Sequence record: PQ287644.1
Length of the DNA: 64,000 nt
Direction: 5' to 3' (one strand)
Within the stretch, counting starts at the first letter, position 1. The number at the start of each line of letters is the position of its first letter. Both the position numbers and the translations under genes were made by a program. The notes beneath the pieces are model-generated. The model was not told where the DNA came from and searched no databases. It worked only from the letters and a program-made list of their open reading frames with translations. This document shows, piece by piece, positions 3,642 through 61,015 of this stretch.

Positions 3642-3663
3642 AAACCTACATAATCAGGGTGAA
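3642..3663 (+). promoter_or_regulatory. Putative phage early promoter
   Basis: aaacctacataatcagggtgaa, one of 8 intergenic copies of a CCTA(C/T)ATNA motif. Confidence 0.7.
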
Positions 3664-3729
3664 TAGACAACGGGATTGTTTGCAGGTAAGTGACTTTCCC
3701 TTCTAAAGACAGAAAAAAGGGTTATCAAG

Positions 3730-12183: not shown

Positions 12184-12193
12184 CTAACGGCCC

Positions 12194-12236
12194 GCCCTCC
12201 TGCCTTATTGGCAGGAGGGTGTATGTCCTTTATTTG
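12194..12236 (+). terminator. Intrinsic terminator
   Basis: gccctcctgcc-ttatt-ggcaggagggt then T-rich. Confidence 0.65.
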
Positions 12237-44326: not shown

Positions 44327-44335
44327 CCCCTTTAT

Positions 44336-44365
44336 TAACTGGGTGGGGAAATCCCCACCCAGTTA
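44336..44365. terminator. Bidirectional terminator hairpin
   Basis: taactgggtgggga-aa-tccccacccagtta. Confidence 0.7.
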
Positions 44366-44376
44366 TGTTCGCTTGG

Positions 44377-47175: not shown

Positions 47176-48228
47176 TTACTGAATAAGTTCTTTTGTAAAC
47201 GTGTGTTTCTTGTGAGTAGGTCTCTTACCCTTTATGCATTTCAACACATTAGGGTAAATAAACCCAGCCTCCCTTAATTCTAACCACCCCCTGTACTCCG
47301 TAACTACTCCGGTTTCAATATGCTTAGCAAAGTAAACCCATTTCTGTCTTGCTTCGCAAGGTCTGTCTTTCTGACTCCACTCGTAGTCCTGTATAACCTT
47401 TACAAGCGCGGCGGAAGGGTTACGGTTGAACTTCTCAACACTCTCTTTAGGGATCTCCCTCCAGGTACACCCCCGGTACGTTTTAGTCTTACCTATTCTT
47501 ACGCTATGCAGGGCTTTGTGATCAATACCCAACTCTTCGCATTCCCGTTGACCTACCACCACGAACTCAGTCCCGTTAAACTCAGGTATATCCACCACCG
47601 TAGCCACCATTGGGCGAACAGTCCGATGATCCATACCTGTGAGATTAACGATCAATCCATTTTCCCTGGCGTGTTTCATATTCTCAGCAGAGGAGGCCCA
47701 TTCCAGGTTCTCGAAATCGTTATCGTCCTTAATGGCATTCTTGTGGTTAACCTCTAGTTCCCCAAGGGGATAGTTAAGCAAGTGCTGAGGAAGCGGGTTG
47801 AACCGGTAACACACAAGACGATGAGCCGACATCGGATAACCATCGACTACCAACGTCTTGTACCCTCTTTGAGCAACATATCCACTGAGTGGTCGATAAG
47901 TCCTCAAGTCAAAGAAACGACCTTTGTTACTTACCATCAAGTAATCAAAGTCTCGGTATTCCTTCTTACTGGTACCCGCCTTGGTGTAAGGGAAATACTT
48001 CGCCTTCAACCACACCTCAAAGTCTGGGTCTTCCTTGAGTTTCTTCTTCAGGGCTTTGTTAACGACAGACGCAATGGTCTGGTCGTCCGCAATCCCTATC
48101 AGCTTTACAGCCAACCTGGGCAAAAGGTCCTTCAGGGTATTGAACTCCTTGAAGAATCGAGGGATGTTAACCTTCAACGCCTCAGTATAGTCCAGTTTGC
48201 CATCAACTCTCTTTGCAGGTATTCTCAT
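47176..48228 (-). CDS. Free-standing HNH homing endonuclease
   Basis: AHRLVCYRF...EVNHKNAIKDDNDFENLEWASSAENMKHA; C-terminal NUMOD-like repeats; no intron core in flanks. Confidence 0.9.
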   Translation of the reverse strand: MRIPAKRVDGKLDYTEALKVNIPRFFKEFNTLKDLLPRLAVKLIGIADDQTIASVVNKALKKKLKEDPDFEVWLKAKYFPYTKAGTSKKEYRDFDYLMVSNKGRFFDLRTYRPLSGYVAQRGYKTLVVDGYPMSAHRLVCYRFNPLPQHLLNYPLGELEVNHKNAIKDDNDFENLEWASSAENMKHARENGLIVNLTGMDHRTVRPMVATVVDIPEFNGTEFVVVGQRECEELGIDHKALHSVRIGKTKTYRGCTWREIPKESVEKFNRNPSAALVKVIQDYEWSQKDRPCEARQKWVYFAKHIETGVVTEYRGWLELREAGFIYPNVLKCIKGKRPTHKKHTFTKELIQ

Positions 48229-48236
48229 GAAGAAAT

Positions 48237-48264
48237 CTCCTATTTATTTACCATATAATAGGAG
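48237..48264 (-). promoter_or_regulatory. RBS-sequestering hairpin with TATG late-promoter motif in loop
   Basis: Minus strand CTCCTATT-atATGgtaaata-AATAGGAG, 8 nt before the ATG. Confidence 0.65.
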
Positions 48265-48295
48265 GGGGCGTGAAACCCCCGAGTTTACTGGCTTT

Positions 48296-50487
48296 CTATC
48301 TTGCAAGAGGGCGTGAAAGGATCCTGGCGAGATCTGCCGCTATCGAGTCATTTATCTTAGCCGCGATGTTGTCAGAACGAATACTGGTCTTAATATCCGT
48401 GACCACACCCGTCAGTTGACGGTTCAAACGCGACCACCGCAGAATGGTATCCAGGTAGTCCATCCCTGTGATACGACTGGCAAAGTTGTTGAACGCACTG
48501 TCATCCGACAGAATACGACTGACCACCGCATTCGGATTAGTAAGATCCAGGATACTAATGGACCGATCAATGGGAAGGGTGACCAGGGGTTCCAGATCGG
48601 TAATCTGTAAACTGGCCGTCATATTCAACGGTTTACGATCACGAGTCCACCCCGCATCTCCTTCCCCCAGGGTCAGATCCAATTGAGTCACCAGACCGGT
48701 ACGGATGATTCCACGAGACTTACAGAAAGCTTTCACGTAGAAGGGGAGGTATGGGTTCCACCGCCTGAGGTATTACCGGCCACTAAGGGCAGTAGGAGGG
48801 AAATCAATACCCAGATCTTAACAATCTGCTCATACGGGTGTGCGTAGTTACACACTGACTTAATGGTGTAGGTCTCCGTATGGAGATTGCAGGTGGATTC
48901 AGTCCAGTGGTCAGGGATCTTGACGTAACTGTTATTGGCAACAGCCAGGGGGATATTTCCAATAACAGACCCTGAAAGGGCTCCCATAGCCGCGTCTTTA
49001 ACAATGTTAATCAGTCCATCGACAATGGCTAAGCCAGTTTGACCTTTAGCCACATCGAAGGTGAAGTCATTGGTAGTGCGAACAATGGAATTGAACTTCT
49101 CCGCCATAGGCGATTGCCCAGTGCTATTAGAGAAGGAATCCCGAGTAGCTCCCCCGTTCCCCTCTACGCGGAAGGTGATCCCATCCATACCGCCAGATAC
49201 AGCGGTTTTAACGAGGTCGTAAATATCTCCCATCCAGGTACGATCGTTAGGGTTGTCTTCGTAGTAGAACTGATCCCCATTGTTAATAGAGGGATTAGCG
49301 GTTACTGAGGGGGTAGCGGGAGAGGGGCGTTGAGGGCGTTCGTTGGGGTTTACAGGAGGAGCTGAAGTACCATAAGACCCACCCGTTCCCATAGGCTGCA
49401 TGGTGGAGGTGGGTTGTCCGTCAGGTCCGGTTGGAGGTTGTTCCAGTTCAAGGTTGGCAATTCCATATTGCTTATTACGTGCAGGGTCGATGTCTTGATA
49501 AGCGCCTCGGTTGAGGTAGGCACTGTCTTCTTCAACGTAGTTGGGTTCGTTATCACCCCGGTATTTACCGACTGTGCTCATTTCCTTTTCAATATACTCT
49601 TGAGAAGGTCTGCCAGCGGTTACTGAACGATCGAAGGTGACTTCTTGAAGGATTTGTTTGGCTCGTTCCAATTTCTGTTGGGGGGAGTTAATTGAAACGT
49701 CGTTGTCCATAGAGGCCAGACGCTCCAACATTACCCGGTGTTTACGCACCCCTTTATTGACCAACCGCATGAGGTCAATAGTCCCATCCTGGTTGATAGT
49801 ATCCGGGAAGAGGGTAGACAAACTGGAAACGACTTTACTGTTGTCGTAATCGGGTTTAAGACCGTACAGGGGATCGGTCTGTTGCTGGTTCATCTTAGGT
49901 AGGATGGGATCGATGTACCCCAGTTTCACCATGAAGTCATTCAGTACACCGGTAGCCACCATGGTGTACGCCCCAACCGCAGGCTTAACAGTCCAGAACT
50001 GATGCTTGGGGGAATCTGCTAAGAATGCCAGGAATTGGGTGCTGATACTCAACAGCTGCATAGGCCAAAAGGCAATAGAACCGATGGCTTGTCCCATGTA
50101 GAACGACAGACTGGGCGCCCGCCCTTTGTTCGCAATGATAGCCGCTGCGGGAGAGAACATGTTTGTAATGAATGACAACAGACCAGCGAACTGAGCCACG
50201 CCTGGGGTAATGGTTAAGAGGGTGGCGTTGTTGTCGTAGATCTCTTTATACATGGAGCCGAATCCCCCTTCTGGGGTGACCATTAACCGTCCGTAACGAG
50301 GATCGGTCGCAGGGCTCCATTGAGGCACAGGGTTCACAAAGCGGTTATCCCCTGTTGCACTACTGAAAACGTTGAAATATTTGTCCCAATCGAGGATGTC
50401 TAATACTTCACTCGGTGGGATACCGCGGGTTAACAGACGGAACGATTTCGTGATAATGTCCCGGTCGCGTGTCGTCACCTGAGCCAT
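48296..50487 (-). CDS. Tail/baseplate protein (phiKZ gp182-like position), split by apparent 1-nt deletion at 48743-48746
   Basis: Adding one C on the minus strand gives ...GGTHTSPFYVKAFCKSRG..., one 730-aa ORF; follows the giant tail protein. Confidence 0.7.
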
Positions 50488-50521
50488 CGTGAATAAATTC
50501 CTAAGGTTAACTAAAAGAGGC

Positions 50522-50543
50522 GGGGAGTACATCAGTACTCCCC
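50522..50543 (-). terminator. Terminator hairpin after giant tail gene
   Basis: ggggagtac-atca-gtactcccc; minus-strand tail gcctctttt. Confidence 0.55.
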
Positions 50544-50555
50544 TATTAAGATGGA

Positions 50556-53500
50556 TCAATTCAAACGGACGGTTTTATCGGTTCCCTGATTCACCTGTTT
50601 GTCTTGCATCTCCGCCATCCGACCCAGTACCTTGTAGATCTCAGCCAGAATACTGTTCGTATCCGAACTGTTATCACCCAGTTTACCCAACGAGGCCTTA
50701 AGCTCAGCCACCAACGCAGAGTCATCGCTACGTGCGGTCGTGAGCGCCTCGGTACCCCGAGGGGACTGAGGAACAGGTTCAAATGGTGCAGACGGAACCG
50801 GTTGAGGTGCAGAGGGCGGTGGAGAACCCTCATTAGACCTCGGGGTCGAGATCGGGACATCCGTAGCCGGGTTACCAAAGGTGGGAGTAGGTGTAGGTGG
50901 AACGTTCCGTTGCATCGGTCCTACCACACCACCGCCCAGTCCGGTGGTATCCTGCCCGTTCGCGGACTGTCCGCCTCGTACAGCGTTAAGGAACTTGTTC
51001 GCTGCTTCAGGGGACTTAAAGGCCGCGTGGATATGCCCGCCCGTACCGAGTGCCGTTCGACTGCGGTATTCATTGATGACTTGGAATTCCTGAGGGCTTA
51101 ATCCTGCCCGACGAAGAATATCCGTTACAATGGCAACCGCTTGGTCACTTCCTTGTGCGCCATTCACCAGGGTGAAGTCTAAGGCCAGGCCTTTAGGATG
51201 AGCGCCTTTAGACCCCTTATTGACGTGGTAGGCGTCATTCAGTGCAGAGAAGTACCGGAAACCCGGAACTGTCTGTTGAATGATTTTACCCAGTTCTTCC
51301 ACAGCAGGGTGGTGTTCACCCCCCGCAATGGCTTCAGGGGATTTCAGGCGCAATCCACTGCTACCCGGTGTATTGGTGTTAACGATCATCCCACCGTTAT
51401 CACCTGACCCGTATTGTCCCCCTCCGCCTCCCATGGTTCCATTCAGGGACGGCAGACTACCACCCACAACGCCCGGAGCCGGTCTACTGACTTGAGGACG
51501 CTGGGGTTCGCTGGGGGCTTCTTGACCGTACAGGTCGGACCCGGTTTGGCTCCCTAACCCACTCCCAGCCGTTTTATCAGCTGTGGTCAGTTCACCACTT
51601 TGTAGTTTCTTCAGGTAATTCAGATAGAGTGCATACCGCTGGGGCATTTCAGGTAACGGATTACCTCCATTCAATCCTGTTGCCGCTCTACCGAAGTCAC
51701 CGGTTTGGCTAATACTCCTCAAGAGCTTAGAGTTCCTGAAGAAGTTCACCGCAATGGCTGCCATGACATTCGGATCGTTACTGGCCAGCTCTGGTCTGTT
51801 CTCCAGATCAATACCCAGCTCTTGCCCAACCCTCCGGTAATTAGCCCGACCCGTCAGCTGAATAAACCCACGTCCTCGGTAACGGTACCCATCACCGGCT
51901 TCCCTGTTCCCTAAGGAGGCGCCTTTACCCCCACCGTACACGGTATTGGCGATGGCCACTTCGCCGGCTTGTACGAGGGCTCTCGCCTGTTCCATGCTCT
52001 TCACTTCCCTGAAGAGTTGAACCAAGCGTTCCGGACTGCTGTACTTCATGTTCTCAGTGGTCCGGGAATAGCCTGAAGACTCGTAGTTGGTAAGGGCGAG
52101 CATTTCAGCGATTTCGCGAGGGTCCGTAAAGCCTTGTTTCAGCATCTCACGGATGATCAACTGCTCCGCCAACGGCTTAGGAACACTCACCCCTCGATCC
52201 GTTCCTTGGTTCGTACGCACACCGGTCATATCCAGATGACTGGTGTCCGAATCACCCGTAATAGGCGTGAAGCCAAAGGCATTCTCAGGGGTTCTGAACC
52301 GACCGTCGCTGCTGTACGTATTCCCAGCGTCTCCGCCAAAGGTACCGTACATCCCTCCTAGAGCAGAATCTCTCCGAGACCGGAACTGTTCCGGGGTAGA
52401 AACATTCGCCTGTTGGTCGGTGAACCCACCCCCTACCCGGTGAGGACTGATCTTCTCAGCCCAGGTTTGGGCGTTGGTCTTACCCGCTTCCAATTCAGGG
52501 TCTTTGAGTTTAGCCTCTACTGACGCTTCCCCCAAGAGGTTCAACATCCTGTCAACTTTATCCGACCGTCCGGGAGAGGTTTCCCAGGCGAAGGGTGCTG
52601 CTCGCACATTCCACACCGAGATGGTAAAGCCAAAGACGCCATTGACTTGGGTTTGAGTCAGTTCCTTGGCGATCTCATACCGTGCGGTGGCGGAAAGGGT
52701 TCTCCAAACCACACCCGGTAGCCCCCGACGGTATTTCTTCATCAGGGTCATGTAGTTGGTCAGTACCGGCAGGAACCGATCCCTGAACCACTTACACCAG
52801 GCATCCACGTACCGATCATCCACCCGGAAGGCGTCCTTGAACCGACCGAAGAGTTCACCTATGTTGCCTTTGAACACCATGTCATCCCCTTTCGCCATAA
52901 ACAGGGATTCACAATGACGTTCCAACTTGAGGACAGCTTCGACCCGCCAGGGGACATCCTTATCATTCCCGTAGGTAGCCACCCGGATAGCAGTAAGCAT
53001 ATCCAGAGCTTTACCATCTGGCATCAGGTCTTGGATATAGATCTGACCGACAACCGCATTGGCGGTATACGCTTTCCCTAACCGATCGATTTCACCTTTA
53101 ACCTCCTTCAGGCGATCGGTGGCCTCCATCTTCTCCCCGAAGTCTTTCCACTGGGTACTCCGGTCTTCCAGCTTCCGTTCCAGTTGAACCCGTTCCTTCT
53201 GAAGGGACTCCAGACTTTGGCCTTTAACCGTAGAAACAGCAAAGGGATCAATGCTGGGATCTTTAGCCCCGACATACTTCTTAAGGGCATCCAAGAGGTT
53301 ACCCACCCGGATGATCGTCATTTGTTGATCAAGGAGAGGAGTCTCTTTGTCAATCTTAGCTACGATCTGGTACGGGGAAGGCACCAACCCACTGAGGGCA
53401 CTGTGGGCTTGTTTGGCCACTTTGTACACGATTAAGTCAGACGAATCGTCATAGTCCTTCAACGATCGCAGTTTAACCGCATCCAAACAGGCCAAGTAGG

Positions 53501-58217: not shown

Positions 58218-59658
58218 ATGAAACCGACTAACATTACCCTCTTAGACCCCCGGACGATTGTTCCGGGTGTCTTTAAACCTATTACGTCTACGGACTCATT
58301 TGAAGGGATGACTCAGAACCTCAATGATGATGGTCTCTTCTCCCTTGACATCTTCGGTAAACTGGGTAGTAAACAACGTGATAACACGGAAGCGTATATC
58401 GACGTTAAACTTCCCATCTTCAATCCCACTTACCTAAAAGCCCTTATACAGATCAAAAGTCTGTATCATTCAATTTTGAAAGGATCGGAATACGCGGTAT
58501 GGGATCCCGAACTGAAGGATTTCATAAAATCGAACATCCTGGAAGGGGAAAAGGGTTTCGCTTTCTTCCTGAAACATTTTGATGAAACCGTCTTCTCCCT
58601 GACCCCCTCTCATAAACGCAAACAACGGGTGGAACTGGCGAACCAATTCCGTAACACGGCGTTAACGGATAAGGTCCTGGTCATCCCCGCGGGTCTCAGG
58701 GATATCCAATTCAATCCAGATGGTTCCCACACCGAACCTGAAATCACCGAATTCTACCGCGCCTTAATGTTCCGGGTGAGGGTGATCCTCGGGAATAAGG
58801 AAGATGCCCTGAACCCCCTTTACGATACCGTTCGGTGGGGGGTACAGAATGCTTTCTTGGAATTGGATAATTACCTCTTTGGTTTACTCCAGGGGAAAGG
58901 GGTGTTCTCCAGCGTCGTATGTCCACCCGGGGGTTCACAACAGCACCCGGAACGTCATTACCGCCCGTAAAGTCTCCAGGACACGTTTAGACTTCGACGA
59001 CGGTGTAGGGCCTAACTCTGCGGACATGGGACTCTACCAAGCCCTGCTGAACTTCCCTTATGTCTGCATCAACGCGTTAACCAACGGCTACCTTTCCAAC
59101 ATCTTCACCCCCAGCTCTCAAACCGCTAAGCTGGTTAATACCAAGACCCTGGAATACGAATACGCTGAAGTCTCCCCCGATGTGGTAGAGAAATGGACTA
59201 CTGCCACTGGGTTAATGAAACTCTTCAACGGGTTTGCTGATCCCTCCCTACGGAGTAAACCCATTGTCATTGAGTGGAGATACTTAGCCCTCATTTATGA
59301 TGATGGGGCTGATGTGTGTGTTCTACATGACATCAACGATCTCCCTCAAGGGAAAGACCGTAAACGGGTGAAACCTATCACCTACATGGAACTCTTCTAC
59401 TTGAGTTGTCACAGTGTCATCGAAGAACAGATCACGGGACAAACCCGGTATCCCATTACGGGAATTGGTTCTATCTTCCCGGCTAAGGTGAACCTACGCA
59501 CCACCACCAATGCGAGCCAGAGGGTGATCCGTAATCCGATTGATTGGAGTGTACGGGAAACCTGTAAACGGTTCCCTAAACGCGAAGCGCATCCCGATTA
59601 CTTCGATGCCATGTCCGTAGACCCCTCTAGAGAAGCTTTGCTCGACAGTGACCATGAT
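58218..59658 (+). CDS. rpoC: Virion RNAP beta-prime N-terminal subunit, exon 1 (two apparent 1-nt shortfalls at 58899-58902 and 58929-58933)
   Basis: DGLFSLDIFG, VLVIPAGLRD, reconstructed GKGGVLQRRMSTRGVHNSTRNVI, ends LDSDHD. Confidence 0.85.
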
Positions 59659-59688: not shown

Positions 59689-59740
59689 TACAACTCCTAT
59701 TGTATGCGGAAGTGTTCGCATTCGACCATAAGGAGTTGTA
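59689..59740 (+). promoter_or_regulatory. RBS-sequestering hairpin with internal TATG for the intron endonuclease
   Basis: TACAACTCCT 59689-59698 pairs perfectly with AGGAGTTGTA 59731-59740; TATG at 59703-59706. Confidence 0.7.
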
Positions 59741-59743
59741 AAG

Positions 59744-61015
59744 ATGCTAACGTGTTTTGGAAAGAAATACGTGTTGTCTACAACTAACACGGTTTACAAT
59801 GTCACCGATAAGACAGATGTTCCAGTCCATCGGATGACAGACGGGAATACGTTCTTCATCGCACGGGGCGATGGGGACGAACTGGTTAAGATCAAACTGG
59901 GGTTAATGATCCTCCATGGAGAAGGAAAGTTCCATCTTCCTATCTCTGAATGGGAACAGGTGAAAGTAGGTTTTCTGGATGACGATACAGGAAACTTTGC
60001 AGCGGATAACCTTTACTTGGTCTATCCTGAAGAGGGTATCCCTTACCCTGAACTTTCCGGGTACTACTACATCCCTGGGTTTGAACTCAACGCGATCAAC
60101 CGAGATGGTGTGGTATACCGAACACTTAGAAAGAATCTTTACCCACCGTATCTGGGTGGTAAGACCGTTCCTAACAGTTTCTACCCCTTTGTTCGACTGG
60201 ATGTGGTCAGTGGGGATGAACGCAAGTATGTCCACCGGTTACTGGCGGAGACCTTCGGTAAACCGCCTAAGGGCTACCCCAAGCTACTGGTCGATCATAA
60301 TGACGGTAACAAGATGAACTTCAAGCTCTTTAACTTGATTTGGGTTACCGCTAAGGACAACTCCTTCAAAGCGTACAACAATCAAGAAGCGAGAGCGGAC
60401 AATAATCCCCTGGAGGTTTTTGACAGGGAATTAGGTCAAGTCTTTAAGTACGTCAGTCAAAATGAGTTTGCTAGAACCATGGAGGTGGATTCTTGGTGCA
60501 TTGGTCTGGTGCTCAAACGTCCTCGCTCGGTGTACAAGAACAGGTACGTTCTTCGTCGGAAGGGAGATACACGTGACTTCCAAGAGATCTGGGACTATAA
60601 GCCCCCTGTGGGTAAGAAGATCCTTGCCCGGAATGTCTTCACCGGTGAAATCACGGTGTATAATTCATTGGCGGAGGCCTCTAGAGCAACACAGGTAGGG
60701 ACAACAGGCATCCTGACGTCCCTGAGTAACACCAACCCGAGATCCGCCTTTAAAGACCTTCAATTCAAGCGGGAGTCTGACGAGACCCCTTGGCCCGATT
60801 TGAATGAATACGAACTGGAATGCATCCGGCGCAAGATGCACCCTGCTACAGCTGTGTATGAAATGTTTGATTCGGTAACCCAGGAGACGTCGATTGTGTA
60901 TGGCGTTGATGCAGTTACCCGAATCACCGGAGCCAATCCCCGTACCGTTATCGTTTGCGCACGAGAAGGTAAGTTGCTCCATTCCCGTTATCGTTTCAAG
61001 AAACTTACACGTTAA
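59744..61015 (+). CDS. Intron-encoded HNH homing endonuclease
   Basis: YVHRLLAETF...VDHNDGNKMNFKLFNLIWVTAKDN; three NUMOD1-like C-terminal repeats. Confidence 0.9.
   Translation: MLTCFGKKYVLSTTNTVYNVTDKTDVPVHRMTDGNTFFIARGDGDELVKIKLGLMILHGEGKFHLPISEWEQVKVGFLDDDTGNFAADNLYLVYPEEGIPYPELSGYYYIPGFELNAINRDGVVYRTLRKNLYPPYLGGKTVPNSFYPFVRLDVVSGDERKYVHRLLAETFGKPPKGYPKLLVDHNDGNKMNFKLFNLIWVTAKDNSFKAYNNQEARADNNPLEVFDRELGQVFKYVSQNEFARTMEVDSWCIGLVLKRPRSVYKNRYVLRRKGDTRDFQEIWDYKPPVGKKILARNVFTGEITVYNSLAEASRATQVGTTGILTSLSNTNPRSAFKDLQFKRESDETPWPDLNEYELECIRRKMHPATAVYEMFDSVTQETSIVYGVDAVTRITGANPRTVIVCAREGKLLHSRYRFKKLTR

Follow-up and report, generated by a model that had tools for sequence, protein, structure and literature searches.

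A hairpin predicted across the ribosome binding site (RBS) of a homing endonuclease gene, with the tetranucleotide TATG in its loop, raises the question of whether this leader controls when the nuclease is made, and of whether the similar leader of a second nuclease gene nearby has a separate origin. The DNA analysed is from Pseudomonas phage HHBS8_1 (Elvirus, Chimalliviridae) and comprises 64,000 nt of record PQ287644.1, referred to as the window. The two nuclease genes are termed HNH1 and HNH2, and the coordinates of all features are listed in Table 1.

Table 1. Features of the two nuclease loci in the window.
Feature	Position	Strand	Basis or remark
HNH1, free-standing HNH (I-HmuI-like) homing endonuclease gene, 350 aa	47176..48228	minus	Pfam, phrog and PDB matches
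Cassette-specific DNA (leader and HNH1 ORF)	47195..48263	minus	alignment with EL, HHBS47_1, L047 and L048
HNH1 start codon ATG	48226..48228	minus	
3' arm AATAGGAG with Shine-Dalgarno (SD) GGAG, 8 nt before ATG	48237..48244	minus	sequence, fold
12-nt loop ATATGGTAAATA	48245..48256	minus	read directly; TATG at 48255-48252 inside
Late-promoter-like ATTATATG (ATT-N-TATG), spanning arm and loop	48252..48259	minus	predicted start G 48252 in loop
5' arm (anti-SD) CTCCTATT of the RBS-sequestering hairpin	48257..48264	minus	sequence, fold, covariation
Native terminator-like hairpin after gp182, shortened here	48264..48280	minus	outside cassette
Recoded patch at 3' end of gp182 homologue; probable HNH1 target or immunity site	48316..48329	minus	mismatches against EL
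HNH2 leader: ACAACTCCT / ATTGTATG / AGGAGTTGT / ATG at 59744	59690..59746	plus	HNH1-like architecture
HNH2, HNH endonuclease gene between fragments of the RNA polymerase beta-subunit gene	59744..61015	plus	fixed in all EL-like phages

The HNH1 gene and its insertion site

The HNH1 protein matched Pfam HNH_3 (7.5e-8, 32.3 bits; curated cut-off 24.8) and phrog_59 (5.5e-27), and the invariant residues H136, N161, H162 and N183 of the HNH catalytic motif are retained in the alignment. The sole solved structure matched by sequence was PDB 1U3E (E = 6e-5, residues 96-257), i.e. I-HmuI, a nicking HNH homing endonuclease of Bacillus phage SPO1. This match is distant.

Orthologues of HNH1 were obtained by a large protein search and contig look-ups. 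All ten relatives found (93% to 35% identity) are located at the same site, after a gp182 homologue, and the gene is missing from this site in EL and seven other EL-like phages. Thus, HNH1 is polymorphic for presence or absence at one fixed site among related genomes. Scans of IMG/VR and JGI metagenomes for close HNH1 relatives returned few loci, which were mostly distant and lacked the leader device described below. The final 19 nt of the HNH1 ORF lie outside the cassette-specific DNA and are common to EL.

Carrier genomes are altered close to the insertion, as would be expected for a homing endonuclease. Over 480 nt, HHBS8_1 and EL differ at 12 positions, all of them inside the recoded patch in the gp182 homologue, and the relative L047 has five synonymous changes in the same patch. 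Judging from this clustering, the patch is probably the target of HNH1 or an immunity site. Autorepression as in I-TevI, in which the operator resembles the homing site, was rejected, since the putative target patch and the HNH1 leader share no similarity (score 6 vs. a shuffled mean of 6.7).

A predicted hairpin over the Shine-Dalgarno sequence of HNH1

The initial annotation had reported a full 8/8 pairing between the two arms of the hairpin, of which the 3' arm contains the SD of HNH1, and a TATG within the 12-nt loop; direct reading of the sequence bears out both. The 3' arm is separated from the HNH1 ATG by the spacer ATTTCTTC. Folded in isolation, the hairpin has an energy of -8.5 kcal/mol (z = -3.4), and 0/200 shuffled sequences fold as well. 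For an RNA beginning with the G of TATG, opening the region from -16 to +3 costs 4.5 kcal/mol instead of 8.8 kcal/mol. The stem is modest, with an opening energy ranking 19th of 73 genes in the window. RBS occlusion was as high in 3/100 shuffled upstream sequences for HNH1 and in 0/100 for HNH2. A scan of the whole window against Rfam at gathering thresholds gave no match, hence no known RNA family covers either HNH leader or the putative intron.

A second hairpin, formed by GGGGG (48280-48276) and CCCCC (48268-48264), had been taken as part of the same device. It does adjoin the SD stem upstream, but it is the native hairpin that follows gp182 in EL, and a 24-nt deletion specific to HHBS8_1 has moved it beside the cassette. 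It comprises 5-6 bp in HHBS8_1 (-11.5 kcal/mol) and 9 bp in EL (-17.0 kcal/mol). Because C 48264 is common to both stems, 7/8 pairs of the SD stem form together with the G5/C5 hairpin.

The position of the SD stem-loop downstream of a gene end, with a T-rich tail (the spacer given above), could suggest that it separates the nuclease gene from gp182 as a terminator of transcription or an insulator and overlaps the SD only incidentally; several other HHBS8_1 genes also have their SD in terminator-like hairpins. This is very unlikely, however, as a terminator consensus scan flagged the G5/C5 hairpin and not the SD hairpin, a separate native hairpin is already present after gp182, and the element accompanies the nuclease gene to another setting, within an RNA polymerase gene. 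An intrinsic terminator, i.e. a GC-rich stem followed by a U tract, was likewise rejected: the SD hairpin is AU-rich, and the tails of the orthologues are not U-rich (AATTACCGC, TAACC).

Conservation of the hairpin at nuclease genes

Complementarity to an SD may arise by chance in an AT-rich leader. When G-U pairs and loops of up to 45 nt were allowed, about 48/242 genes had a stem of 8 bp or more that touched the SD zone. This crude search was too permissive, and opening-energy and shuffle tests were therefore used instead. With these, RBS occlusion by the upstream sequence was significant for 12/16 chimallivirus HNH leaders vs. 5/55 ordinary genes (Fisher's exact test, p = 6e-7), whereby the HNH leaders are related and their counts are non-independent events. 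Such occlusion is thus commoner at these nuclease genes than at ordinary genes.

An SD-sequestering stem of different sequence is kept in 8/10 HNH1 relatives, examples being CCCTCTATT/AATAGAGGG, CCCCATT/AATGGGG, CTATTG/CAATAG, CACTACTCC/GGAGTAGTG and CACTGCTTC/GGAGCAGTG. An RBS-sequestering hairpin is also present in the leaders of phiKZ gp179 and PhiPA3 gp210. Covariation was assessed for 12 leaders in an arm-only alignment, hand-anchored on the SD and the anti-SD, as MAFFT could not align the 3' arms structurally. Changes on both sides were observed at 10/12 pairs, and 79.9% of the cells were paired vs. 62% in shuffles (0/500) and 35-52% with the partner slid. The G-U pairs occur on the sense strand, which fits an RNA structure. 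Covariation, shuffle tests and conservation across genera contradict an origin by chance, which is hardly credible. The hairpin at the nuclease genes is conserved and selected, as indicated by the covariation, the enrichment at HNH leaders and the genome-wide ranks of HNH1 and HNH2 given below. As far as the aligned leaders tell, the RBS-hiding hairpin moves together with the cassette, and compensatory changes preserve it.

A late-promoter-like motif in the loop

In phiKZ, late promoters such as P119L contain TATG, have their +1 at its G and are read by the non-virion RNA polymerase (nvRNAP) gp123, for which TATG is needed (PMC4666361; PMC12809450). Any single substitution in TATG strongly cut in vitro transcription, yet the motif is necessary and insufficient (PMC4666361). 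In HHBS8_1, bare TATG was not enriched in intergenic DNA (44 observed vs. 70 expected), and its frequency upstream of genes (3.9%) was similar to that of permuted 4-mers; hence, the extended motif alone is informative.

In the HNH1 loop, TATG is part of ATT-N-TATG. A MAFFT alignment of seven leaders shows ATT-N-TAT invariant and the arms variable. For ATTNTATG, 7/17 genomic copies are found in co-oriented non-coding DNA at most 120 nt upstream of genes, which is rank 1 of 105 motifs of the same composition (p = 1.4e-5; p = 8e-4 after removal of the two HNH sites). The other upstream sites mostly precede structural genes. Furthermore, the loop motif matches CATTTTATGT, which is conserved before the major capsid gene in HHBS8_1, Klebsiella phiKp_32 and Erwinia RisingSun, and extends the late-promoter core of phiKZ. 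Upstream enrichment and capsid-gene conservation, together with the phiKZ biochemistry (PMC4666361), indicate that ATT-N-TATG behaves like a late promoter in this clade. Like P119L (TATTGCTATG), the HNH2 leader (TATTGTATG) has TATG at the predicted start; unlike in phiKZ, the motif of the EL-like clade is longer, and the HHBS8_1 sites are candidates. The EL early promoter motif CCTACATTATY (PMC7058600) was searched as well; it is absent from the HNH1 leader and precedes some distant homologues.

Conservation of the hairpin is wider than that of exact TATG. L047, the closest relative of HNH1 (93% identical), has TACG, L048 and L051 have TATA, and phiKZ gp179 and PhiPA3 gp210 have TATAG, although PhiPA3 gp210 is active in infection (PMC11620839). 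These variants, like the lack of enrichment of bare TATG in intergenic DNA, would fit a constitutive translational damper that acts on every transcript without an internal promoter, the TATG-like motif being kept for loop structure, for protein binding or by descent. Such a damper is possible, but we consider it doubtful, for three reasons: the arms covary, yet ATT-N-TAT, in a stretch of the leader that is unpaired or only in part paired, does not vary; in several genera, the extended motif is also found at late structural genes and at the major capsid gene; and occlusion is stronger where TATG is exact (mean 15.0 vs. 10.2 kcal/mol in the other leaders, one-sided p = 0.025).

The inverted repeat might also act on the DNA, with extrusion or easier melting of the non-template strand showing TATG, single-stranded within a loop, to the beta-like subunit of the nvRNAP, similar to a hairpin promoter of the N4 type, and burial of the SD being secondary. 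Indeed, once the strands are open, phiKZ gp123 binds TATG on the non-template strand, the choice of true promoters among TATG copies is thought to involve the ease of strand separation (PMC12809450), and the candidate promoter of the capsid gene also lies within an inverted repeat (CTGCA..TGCAG). On the other hand, the remaining ATTNTATG sites are not consistently flanked by an inverted repeat, phiKZ P119L is without such a repeat, and loop sizes range from 8 to 32 nt across the leaders. In every case the 3' arm is formed by the SD, joined in L052 by the AUG, which points to translation. An action on DNA with only secondary SD burial is therefore quite improbable. A dual use, in which the DNA repeat presents ATT-N-TATG single-stranded, within a hairpin loop, to the nvRNAP as a structure-dependent promoter and the same repeat gates translation on the RNA, is improbable as well. 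If true, it would explain how the 4-base core is chosen among hundreds of TATG copies, and it would make the homing cassette the carrier of its own promoter and gate, a module able to function at any landing site in any chimallivirus.

Relationship between the HNH1 and HNH2 leaders

In the HNH2 leader, the 5' arm (59690-59698) pairs with the 3' arm (59731-59739), and TATG is found at 59703-59706. For an RNA beginning with the G of this TATG, the opening cost of the region from -16 to +3 is 2.4 kcal/mol instead of 13.0 kcal/mol. Ranked by this relief of occlusion, HNH2 is first and HNH1 second among the 242 genes of the genome; the probability that two of the three HNH genes of the genome occupy both top ranks by chance is about 1e-4. 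This upholds the initial annotation in that both nuclease genes have a common architecture.

Its further description of the two genes as unrelated, with different stem sequences and a convergent control, has to be revised. Both proteins match HNH_3 and phrog_59, so the nucleases are related. The stems do differ, though not wholly, as CTCCTATTNTATG is common to both leaders: with up to one mismatch, 0.24 sites are expected in the window, the two HNH leaders are the only exact matches, and a third site has one mismatch. The family membership, the common CTCCTATTNTATG and the inheritance of the leader with the cassette down to 35% identity lend no support to convergence; common descent of a portable module would explain the likeness of HNH1 and HNH2 at least as well. 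The device is missing from the third HNH gene in the genome (record 18986) and from many homologues that are more distant.

Proposed control of the nuclease genes

We consider it fairly probable that the HNH1 leader works as a portable translational gate with two states, built like that of T4 I-TevI and fitted to a chimallivirus. In the first state, a transcript entering from upstream would contain both arms, for instance by read-through from the co-oriented gp183-gp182 (tail/structural) operon across the weakened gp182 hairpin; CUCCUAUU would pair with AAUAGGAG, the SD would be buried and the nuclease would remain untranslated. In the second state, the nvRNAP would start at the loop G of the late-promoter-like motif, giving an mRNA without the 5' arm, with 24 nt ahead of the AUG and a free SD. 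HNH2 would work in the same way with a stronger stem. Complementarity, compensatory conservation, enrichment at HNH genes and the promoter-like behaviour of ATT-N-TATG are observed; from these we infer the transcript start at 48252, the existence of read-through transcripts and a lowering of translation by the hairpin in vivo.

The gp183-gp182 operon is probably late itself. If so, the hairpin would insulate the nuclease from abundant late polycistronic mRNA and not from early read-through, and a temporal switch is not obviously needed. As nucleus-forming phages make mRNA in the phage nucleus and have it translated outside, the leader would be fully folded before it meets a ribosome (PMC11620839, PMC12908238).

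A hairpin-buried SD combined with a late promoter is documented in T4 and Aeh1 (PMC2988022). As in T4, the endonuclease gene would be on a longer transcript, its hairpin contains both the SD, about 8 nt ahead of the AUG, and a candidate late-class promoter motif, and the device occurs at intron-type and free-standing genes. The hallmark of this control, an SD and sometimes an AUG in a stable leader hairpin, is found for HNH1 in silico, from the sequence. In T4, however, the host RNA polymerase with gp55 reads the -10-type TATAAATA, whereas the candidate in HHBS8_1 is the nvRNAP motif ATT-N-TATG overlapping the start. The upstream genes are early or middle in T4 and form a structural, probably late operon in HHBS8_1, and the latter belongs to a different phage family, of a type that separates transcription from translation by the phage nucleus. 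The T4 late genes e, soc, 49 and others are controlled likewise (PMC2988022; PMC3014915), a general phage strategy in which long early transcripts are silent and short late ones are open; in HHBS8_1, by contrast, only the two HNH genes have the full architecture according to the occlusion-relief metric. PhiPA3 gp210 and phiKZ gp179 are close counterparts, being of the HNH_3 family and located at the virion RNA polymerase gene, the neighbourhood of HNH2 (PMC11620839), with an RBS-sequestering hairpin, but they differ in the TATAG of their loops. The literature examined on these two genes does not mention their regulation.

Significance

If confirmed, the gate would mean that nucleus-forming jumbo phages, which use a completely different, sigma-less RNA polymerase, have rebuilt the logic by which T4 restrains homing endonucleases. 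ATT-N-TATG is a candidate extended late-promoter consensus for EL-like, Klebsiella and Erwinia chimalliviruses, for which the 4-base core of phiKZ alone was known earlier. The leaders with TATG, TACG and TATAG on otherwise near-identical sequences provide a natural mutational series for promoter studies of the nvRNAP. The finding also bears on the expression of intron-encoded and free-standing endonucleases, which have recently been shown to be weapons in the competition between phages (PhiPA3 gp210).

RBS hairpins of the two HNH genes

The window corresponds to positions 124001-188000 of PQ287644.1 (100% identity, megablast) and thus to Pseudomonas phage HHBS8_1, an EL-like jumbo phage (Elvirus, Chimalliviridae). 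The initial annotation had described an 8/8 stem burying the Shine-Dalgarno (SD) sequence of the HNH endonuclease gene HNH1, with TATG in the loop, and a like architecture at a second HNH gene about 11 kb away. Direct reading of the minus strand confirmed the stem, and the leader of the second gene, HNH2, has arms flanking TATG. The HNH1 hairpin alone folds with -8.5 kcal/mol and none of 200 shuffles folded as well. Since C 48264 is shared with the adjacent G5/C5 hairpin, seven of the eight SD-stem pairs coexist with the latter in context. The only solved relative matched by HNH1 is the nicking homing endonuclease I-HmuI (PDB 1U3E).

Features of the HNH loci and further sites (window positions unless a record or contig is named)
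Feature	Position	Strand	Remarks
HNH1	47176-48228	-	350 aa; Pfam HNH_3 above cut-off; phrog_59 'HNH endonuclease'
HNH1 5' arm (anti-SD) CTCCTATT	48264-48257	-	perfect complement of 3' arm
HNH1 loop ATATGGTAAATA		-	12 nt; TATG at 48255-48252
HNH1 3' arm AATAGGAG	48244-48237	-	includes GGAG, 8 nt before ATG 48228-48226
GGGGG...CCCCC hairpin	48280-48264	-	abuts HNH1 SD hairpin
HNH2	59744-61015	+	between RNA polymerase beta-subunit gene fragments; 11.5 kb from HNH1
HNH2 leader arms ACAACTCCT / AGGAGTTGT		+	TATG 59703-59706 between; fold -19 kcal/mol
Split gp182 homologue (phrog_3181)	48733-50559, 48296-48736	-	one 730-aa gene in EL
Recoded patch in gp182 homologue	48316-48329	-	14 nt
GC-rich SD hairpins	12190-12225, 44335-44367, 58815-58851	+	terminator-like; SD in 3' arm
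ATTNTATG sites	27783, 37558, 40519	-	43-88 nt upstream of structural genes
ATTNTATG sites	record 75805, 105868	+	43-88 nt upstream of structural genes
ATTNTATG site	record 105918	-	43-88 nt upstream of a structural gene
RuvC-like resolvase leader	record 102866-102915		outside window
Third HNH gene (L029)	record PQ287644.1 18986-19978		outside window; HNH_3/NUMOD1
PhiPA3 gp210 hairpin	L056 32955-33000	-	GTCTATaCTCCAA..TTGGAGgATAGAC
phiKZ gp179 hairpin	L039 330-372		GTTATCCTAT..ATAGGATAAC
EL 'empty' site	L002 ~3650-3700

The third HNH gene adjoins a gene for an RNA polymerase beta subunit. It starts with GTG, its SD is weak, and it carries neither an RBS hairpin nor TATG. The gp182 homologue is split at a C4 run (48743-48746, minus strand), which is C5 in EL and HHBS47_1; the difference reflects either a genuine frameshift or an error in sequencing the homopolymer.

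Occlusion in comparison to other genes

Burial of the ribosome-binding site (RBS) by the upstream leader was quantified for all 242 HHBS8_1 genes as the cost of opening -16..+3, in the long RNA versus an RNA that begins with the G of any TATG upstream. HNH2 ranked first (13.0 to 2.4 kcal/mol) and HNH1 second (8.8 to 4.5 kcal/mol). Furthermore, native leaders were compared to leaders with a shuffled upstream part, whereby occlusion was considered significant if ≤ 5 of 100 shuffles were as high. Of 16 HNH leaders from chimalliviruses, 12 showed significant occlusion, compared to 5 of 55 ordinary genes of HHBS8_1 with similar intergenic space, for which the median z is negative (Fisher p = 6e-7). 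That the architecture is no commoner at nuclease genes than at random genes is not borne out by this comparison. A bare 8-bp stem near the SD is common among HHBS8_1 genes, and the HNH1 stem is moderate (opening energy 19th of 73 in the window).

The GC-rich SD hairpins of other genes, e.g. CCCTCCTGCC..GGCAGGAGGG before the gene at 12223, require 20-25 kcal/mol for opening and lack TATG. The highest RBS occlusion of the sampled ordinary genes (z = 4.8) belongs to the RuvC-like Holliday junction resolvase and is formed by ACGGGTCT..AGACCCGT, the loop of which contains CTATAG; this resembles the situation at T4 gene 49.

Conservation of the hairpin

A search of 5.8 billion proteins yielded six closer HNH1 relatives (93, 60, 51, 43, 41 and 40% identity), and GenBank two more from Raoultella and Klebsiella jumbo phages (36% and 35%). 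Every relative is located 3' of a gp182 homologue, and before a convergent gp181 homologue wherever the contig is long enough. Because of this identical position, HNH1 is regarded as a site-specific free-standing homing cassette. The SD is buried in a stem in 8 of 10 leaders, but the stem sequence varies: CTCCTATT/AATAGGAG, CCCTCTATT/AATAGAGGG, CCCCATT/AATGGGG, CACTACTCC/GGAGTAGTG, CACTGCTTC/GGAGCAGTG, and CTATTG/CAATAG with an outer helix taking in the AUG.

For covariation, the arms of 12 leaders, including the HNH2 family, Goslar gp206, phiKZ gp179 and PhiPA3 gp210, were aligned by hand using the anchors ATT/AAT and CTCC/GGAG. Both-sided changes occurred in 10 of 12 pairs, and compensations were mostly in outer pairs beyond the anchors. 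Paired cells amounted to 79.9%, versus 62% with partners shuffled (0/500 as high) and 35-52% with the partner slid; as the alignment is structure-fitted and the sequences are related, this is supportive and carries no formal probability. The HNH1 leader hairpin is very probably a selected RBS-occluding element. The SD of PhiPA3 gp210, an experimentally active intron endonuclease, and that of phiKZ gp179 also lie in hairpins.

Cassette limits and native flank

HNH1 is absent from EL, HHBS47_1 and six further EL-like phages, and the cassette limits were obtained by aligning occupied versus empty sites. The G5/C5 hairpin, initially described as abutting upstream, is the native hairpin 3' of EL gp182 (CTCGGGGGTTTCACGCCCCCGAG, -17.0 kcal/mol in EL), and in the window cassette-specific DNA starts immediately 3' of CCCCC. 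Because the 93%-identical relative L047 retains 24 nt (GGGTTTACTAAGCAAACATACAC) between the native hairpin and CTCCTATT, the abutment is a deletion private to HHBS8_1, which also weakened the native hairpin to -11.5 kcal/mol. The G5/C5 hairpin is outside the regulatory device.

The EL site was compared to window positions 47176-47194 and to positions 2456-2470 of L048, the contig of the 60% relative. It retains both CCCTCTATT, which is the 5' arm in the L048-type hairpin, and the terminal codons of HNH1, AAAAGAACTTATTCAGTAA. Either a cassette was lost from EL and left this ghost behind, or the cassette took arm and C-terminus from flank sequence. Within the 3'-terminal 480 nt of the gp182 homologue, all 12 differences to EL fall into the recoded patch. 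L047 has five changes there, all synonymous, and the other allele is present in EL (no HNH) and L048 (60% HNH). Judged by this pattern, the patch looks like the target of the HNH1 endonuclease, probably recoded for self-immunity.

Relatedness of the two leaders

The two HNH genes had been called unrelated and their control convergent. Although the alignment of their proteins is confined to the surroundings of the HNH motif, both fall into HNH_3 and phrog_59, and the leaders have CTCCTATTNTATG in common, so that neither statement is supported. The HNH2 family (Raoultella L035, Goslar gp206) keeps the same CTATTATATG / CCTATTAATATG module. The likeness is partly forced, because CTCC is obligatory in an anti-SD and ATTNTATG in the promoter; even so, inheritance of a portable leader module is no less likely than convergence. 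Homologues at greater distance have other solutions, e.g. early-promoter-like CCTACATTATY motifs, or none. In distant HNH1-family homologues on three IMG/VR contigs (L017, L026, L027), the EL-type early promoter motif CCTACATTAYC, ~40-60 nt before the start codon, takes the place of the hairpin, thus cassettes of one family seem to be wired to different temporal classes.

Candidate promoter in the loop

Late promoters of phiKZ consist of TATG with +1 at the G, each position being required in vitro (PMC4666361), and the beta-like subunit gp123 recognises the motif on the opened non-template strand (PMC12809450). Bare TATG is not enriched in HHBS8_1. Among seven leaders with varying arms, ATT-N-TA is invariant and ATT-N-TAT is present in six. 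Of the 17 genomic copies of the extended motif ATTNTATG, seven lie in co-oriented, non-coding DNA ≤ 120 nt upstream of a gene. This placement ranks first of 105 same-composition permuted motifs (mean 5.3%; binomial p = 1.4e-5, or 8e-4 without the two HNH sites). Apart from the two HNH sites, these upstream copies stand before genes for the major head protein and for virion structural proteins and before the first gene of a tail operon; the sites at structural genes are candidate EL-like late promoters. Upstream of the major capsid gene, CATTTTATGT is conserved in three genera (HHBS8_1, Klebsiella phiKp_32, Erwinia RisingSun) and FishSpeaker has CATGTTATGT, the capsid proteins compared being only 43-57% identical. 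A conserved palindrome, AACAAA..TTTGTT, lies 3' of CATTTTATGT in this leader. Occlusion is 15.0 kcal/mol in leaders with exact TATG versus 10.2 without (p = 0.025), as an escape route would allow.

Leader conservation, genome position and capsid-gene conservation, all in silico, support a putative promoter at ATT-N-TATG. Against it count the missing enrichment of bare TATG, TACG in L047, TATA in L048 and L051, and TATAG in the loops of phiKZ gp179 and PhiPA3 gp210. It was in these two phages that the TATG rule and endonuclease activity, respectively, were established (PMC4666361, PMC11620839). The non-TATG leaders may hold promoters that are weak or have decayed; alternatively, the hairpin may act there as a damper only.

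Proposed mechanism

A promoter inside the hairpin may well complete the switch. Transcripts spanning both arms would be translationally silent, and those from the predicted starts G 48252 (HNH1) or G 59706 (HNH2) would lack the 5' arm and be open. The equivalent arrangement is known for T4 I-TevI, I-TevII, I-TevIII and segB, Aeh1 mobE, and T4 e, soc and 49 (PMC2988022), and the control principle is textbook T4 biology. A literature search yielded no description of such control in chimalliviruses, and the PhiPA3 gp210 paper (PMC11620839) mentions neither promoters nor hairpins. The most useful by-products are the extended consensus for late promoters and the series of natural TATG/TACG/TATAG variants.

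HHBS8_1 differs from T4 in polymerase and promoter class. In nucleus-forming phages, unlike T4, transcription and translation are physically apart (PMC11620839, PMC12908238), hence the rationale valid for T4, to keep a folding intron free of ribosomes, would not apply. Furthermore, gp183-gp182, the operon upstream, is structural and itself probably late, so that the gate would not delay the nuclease but insulate it from a polycistronic mRNA that is abundant, and determine its dose.
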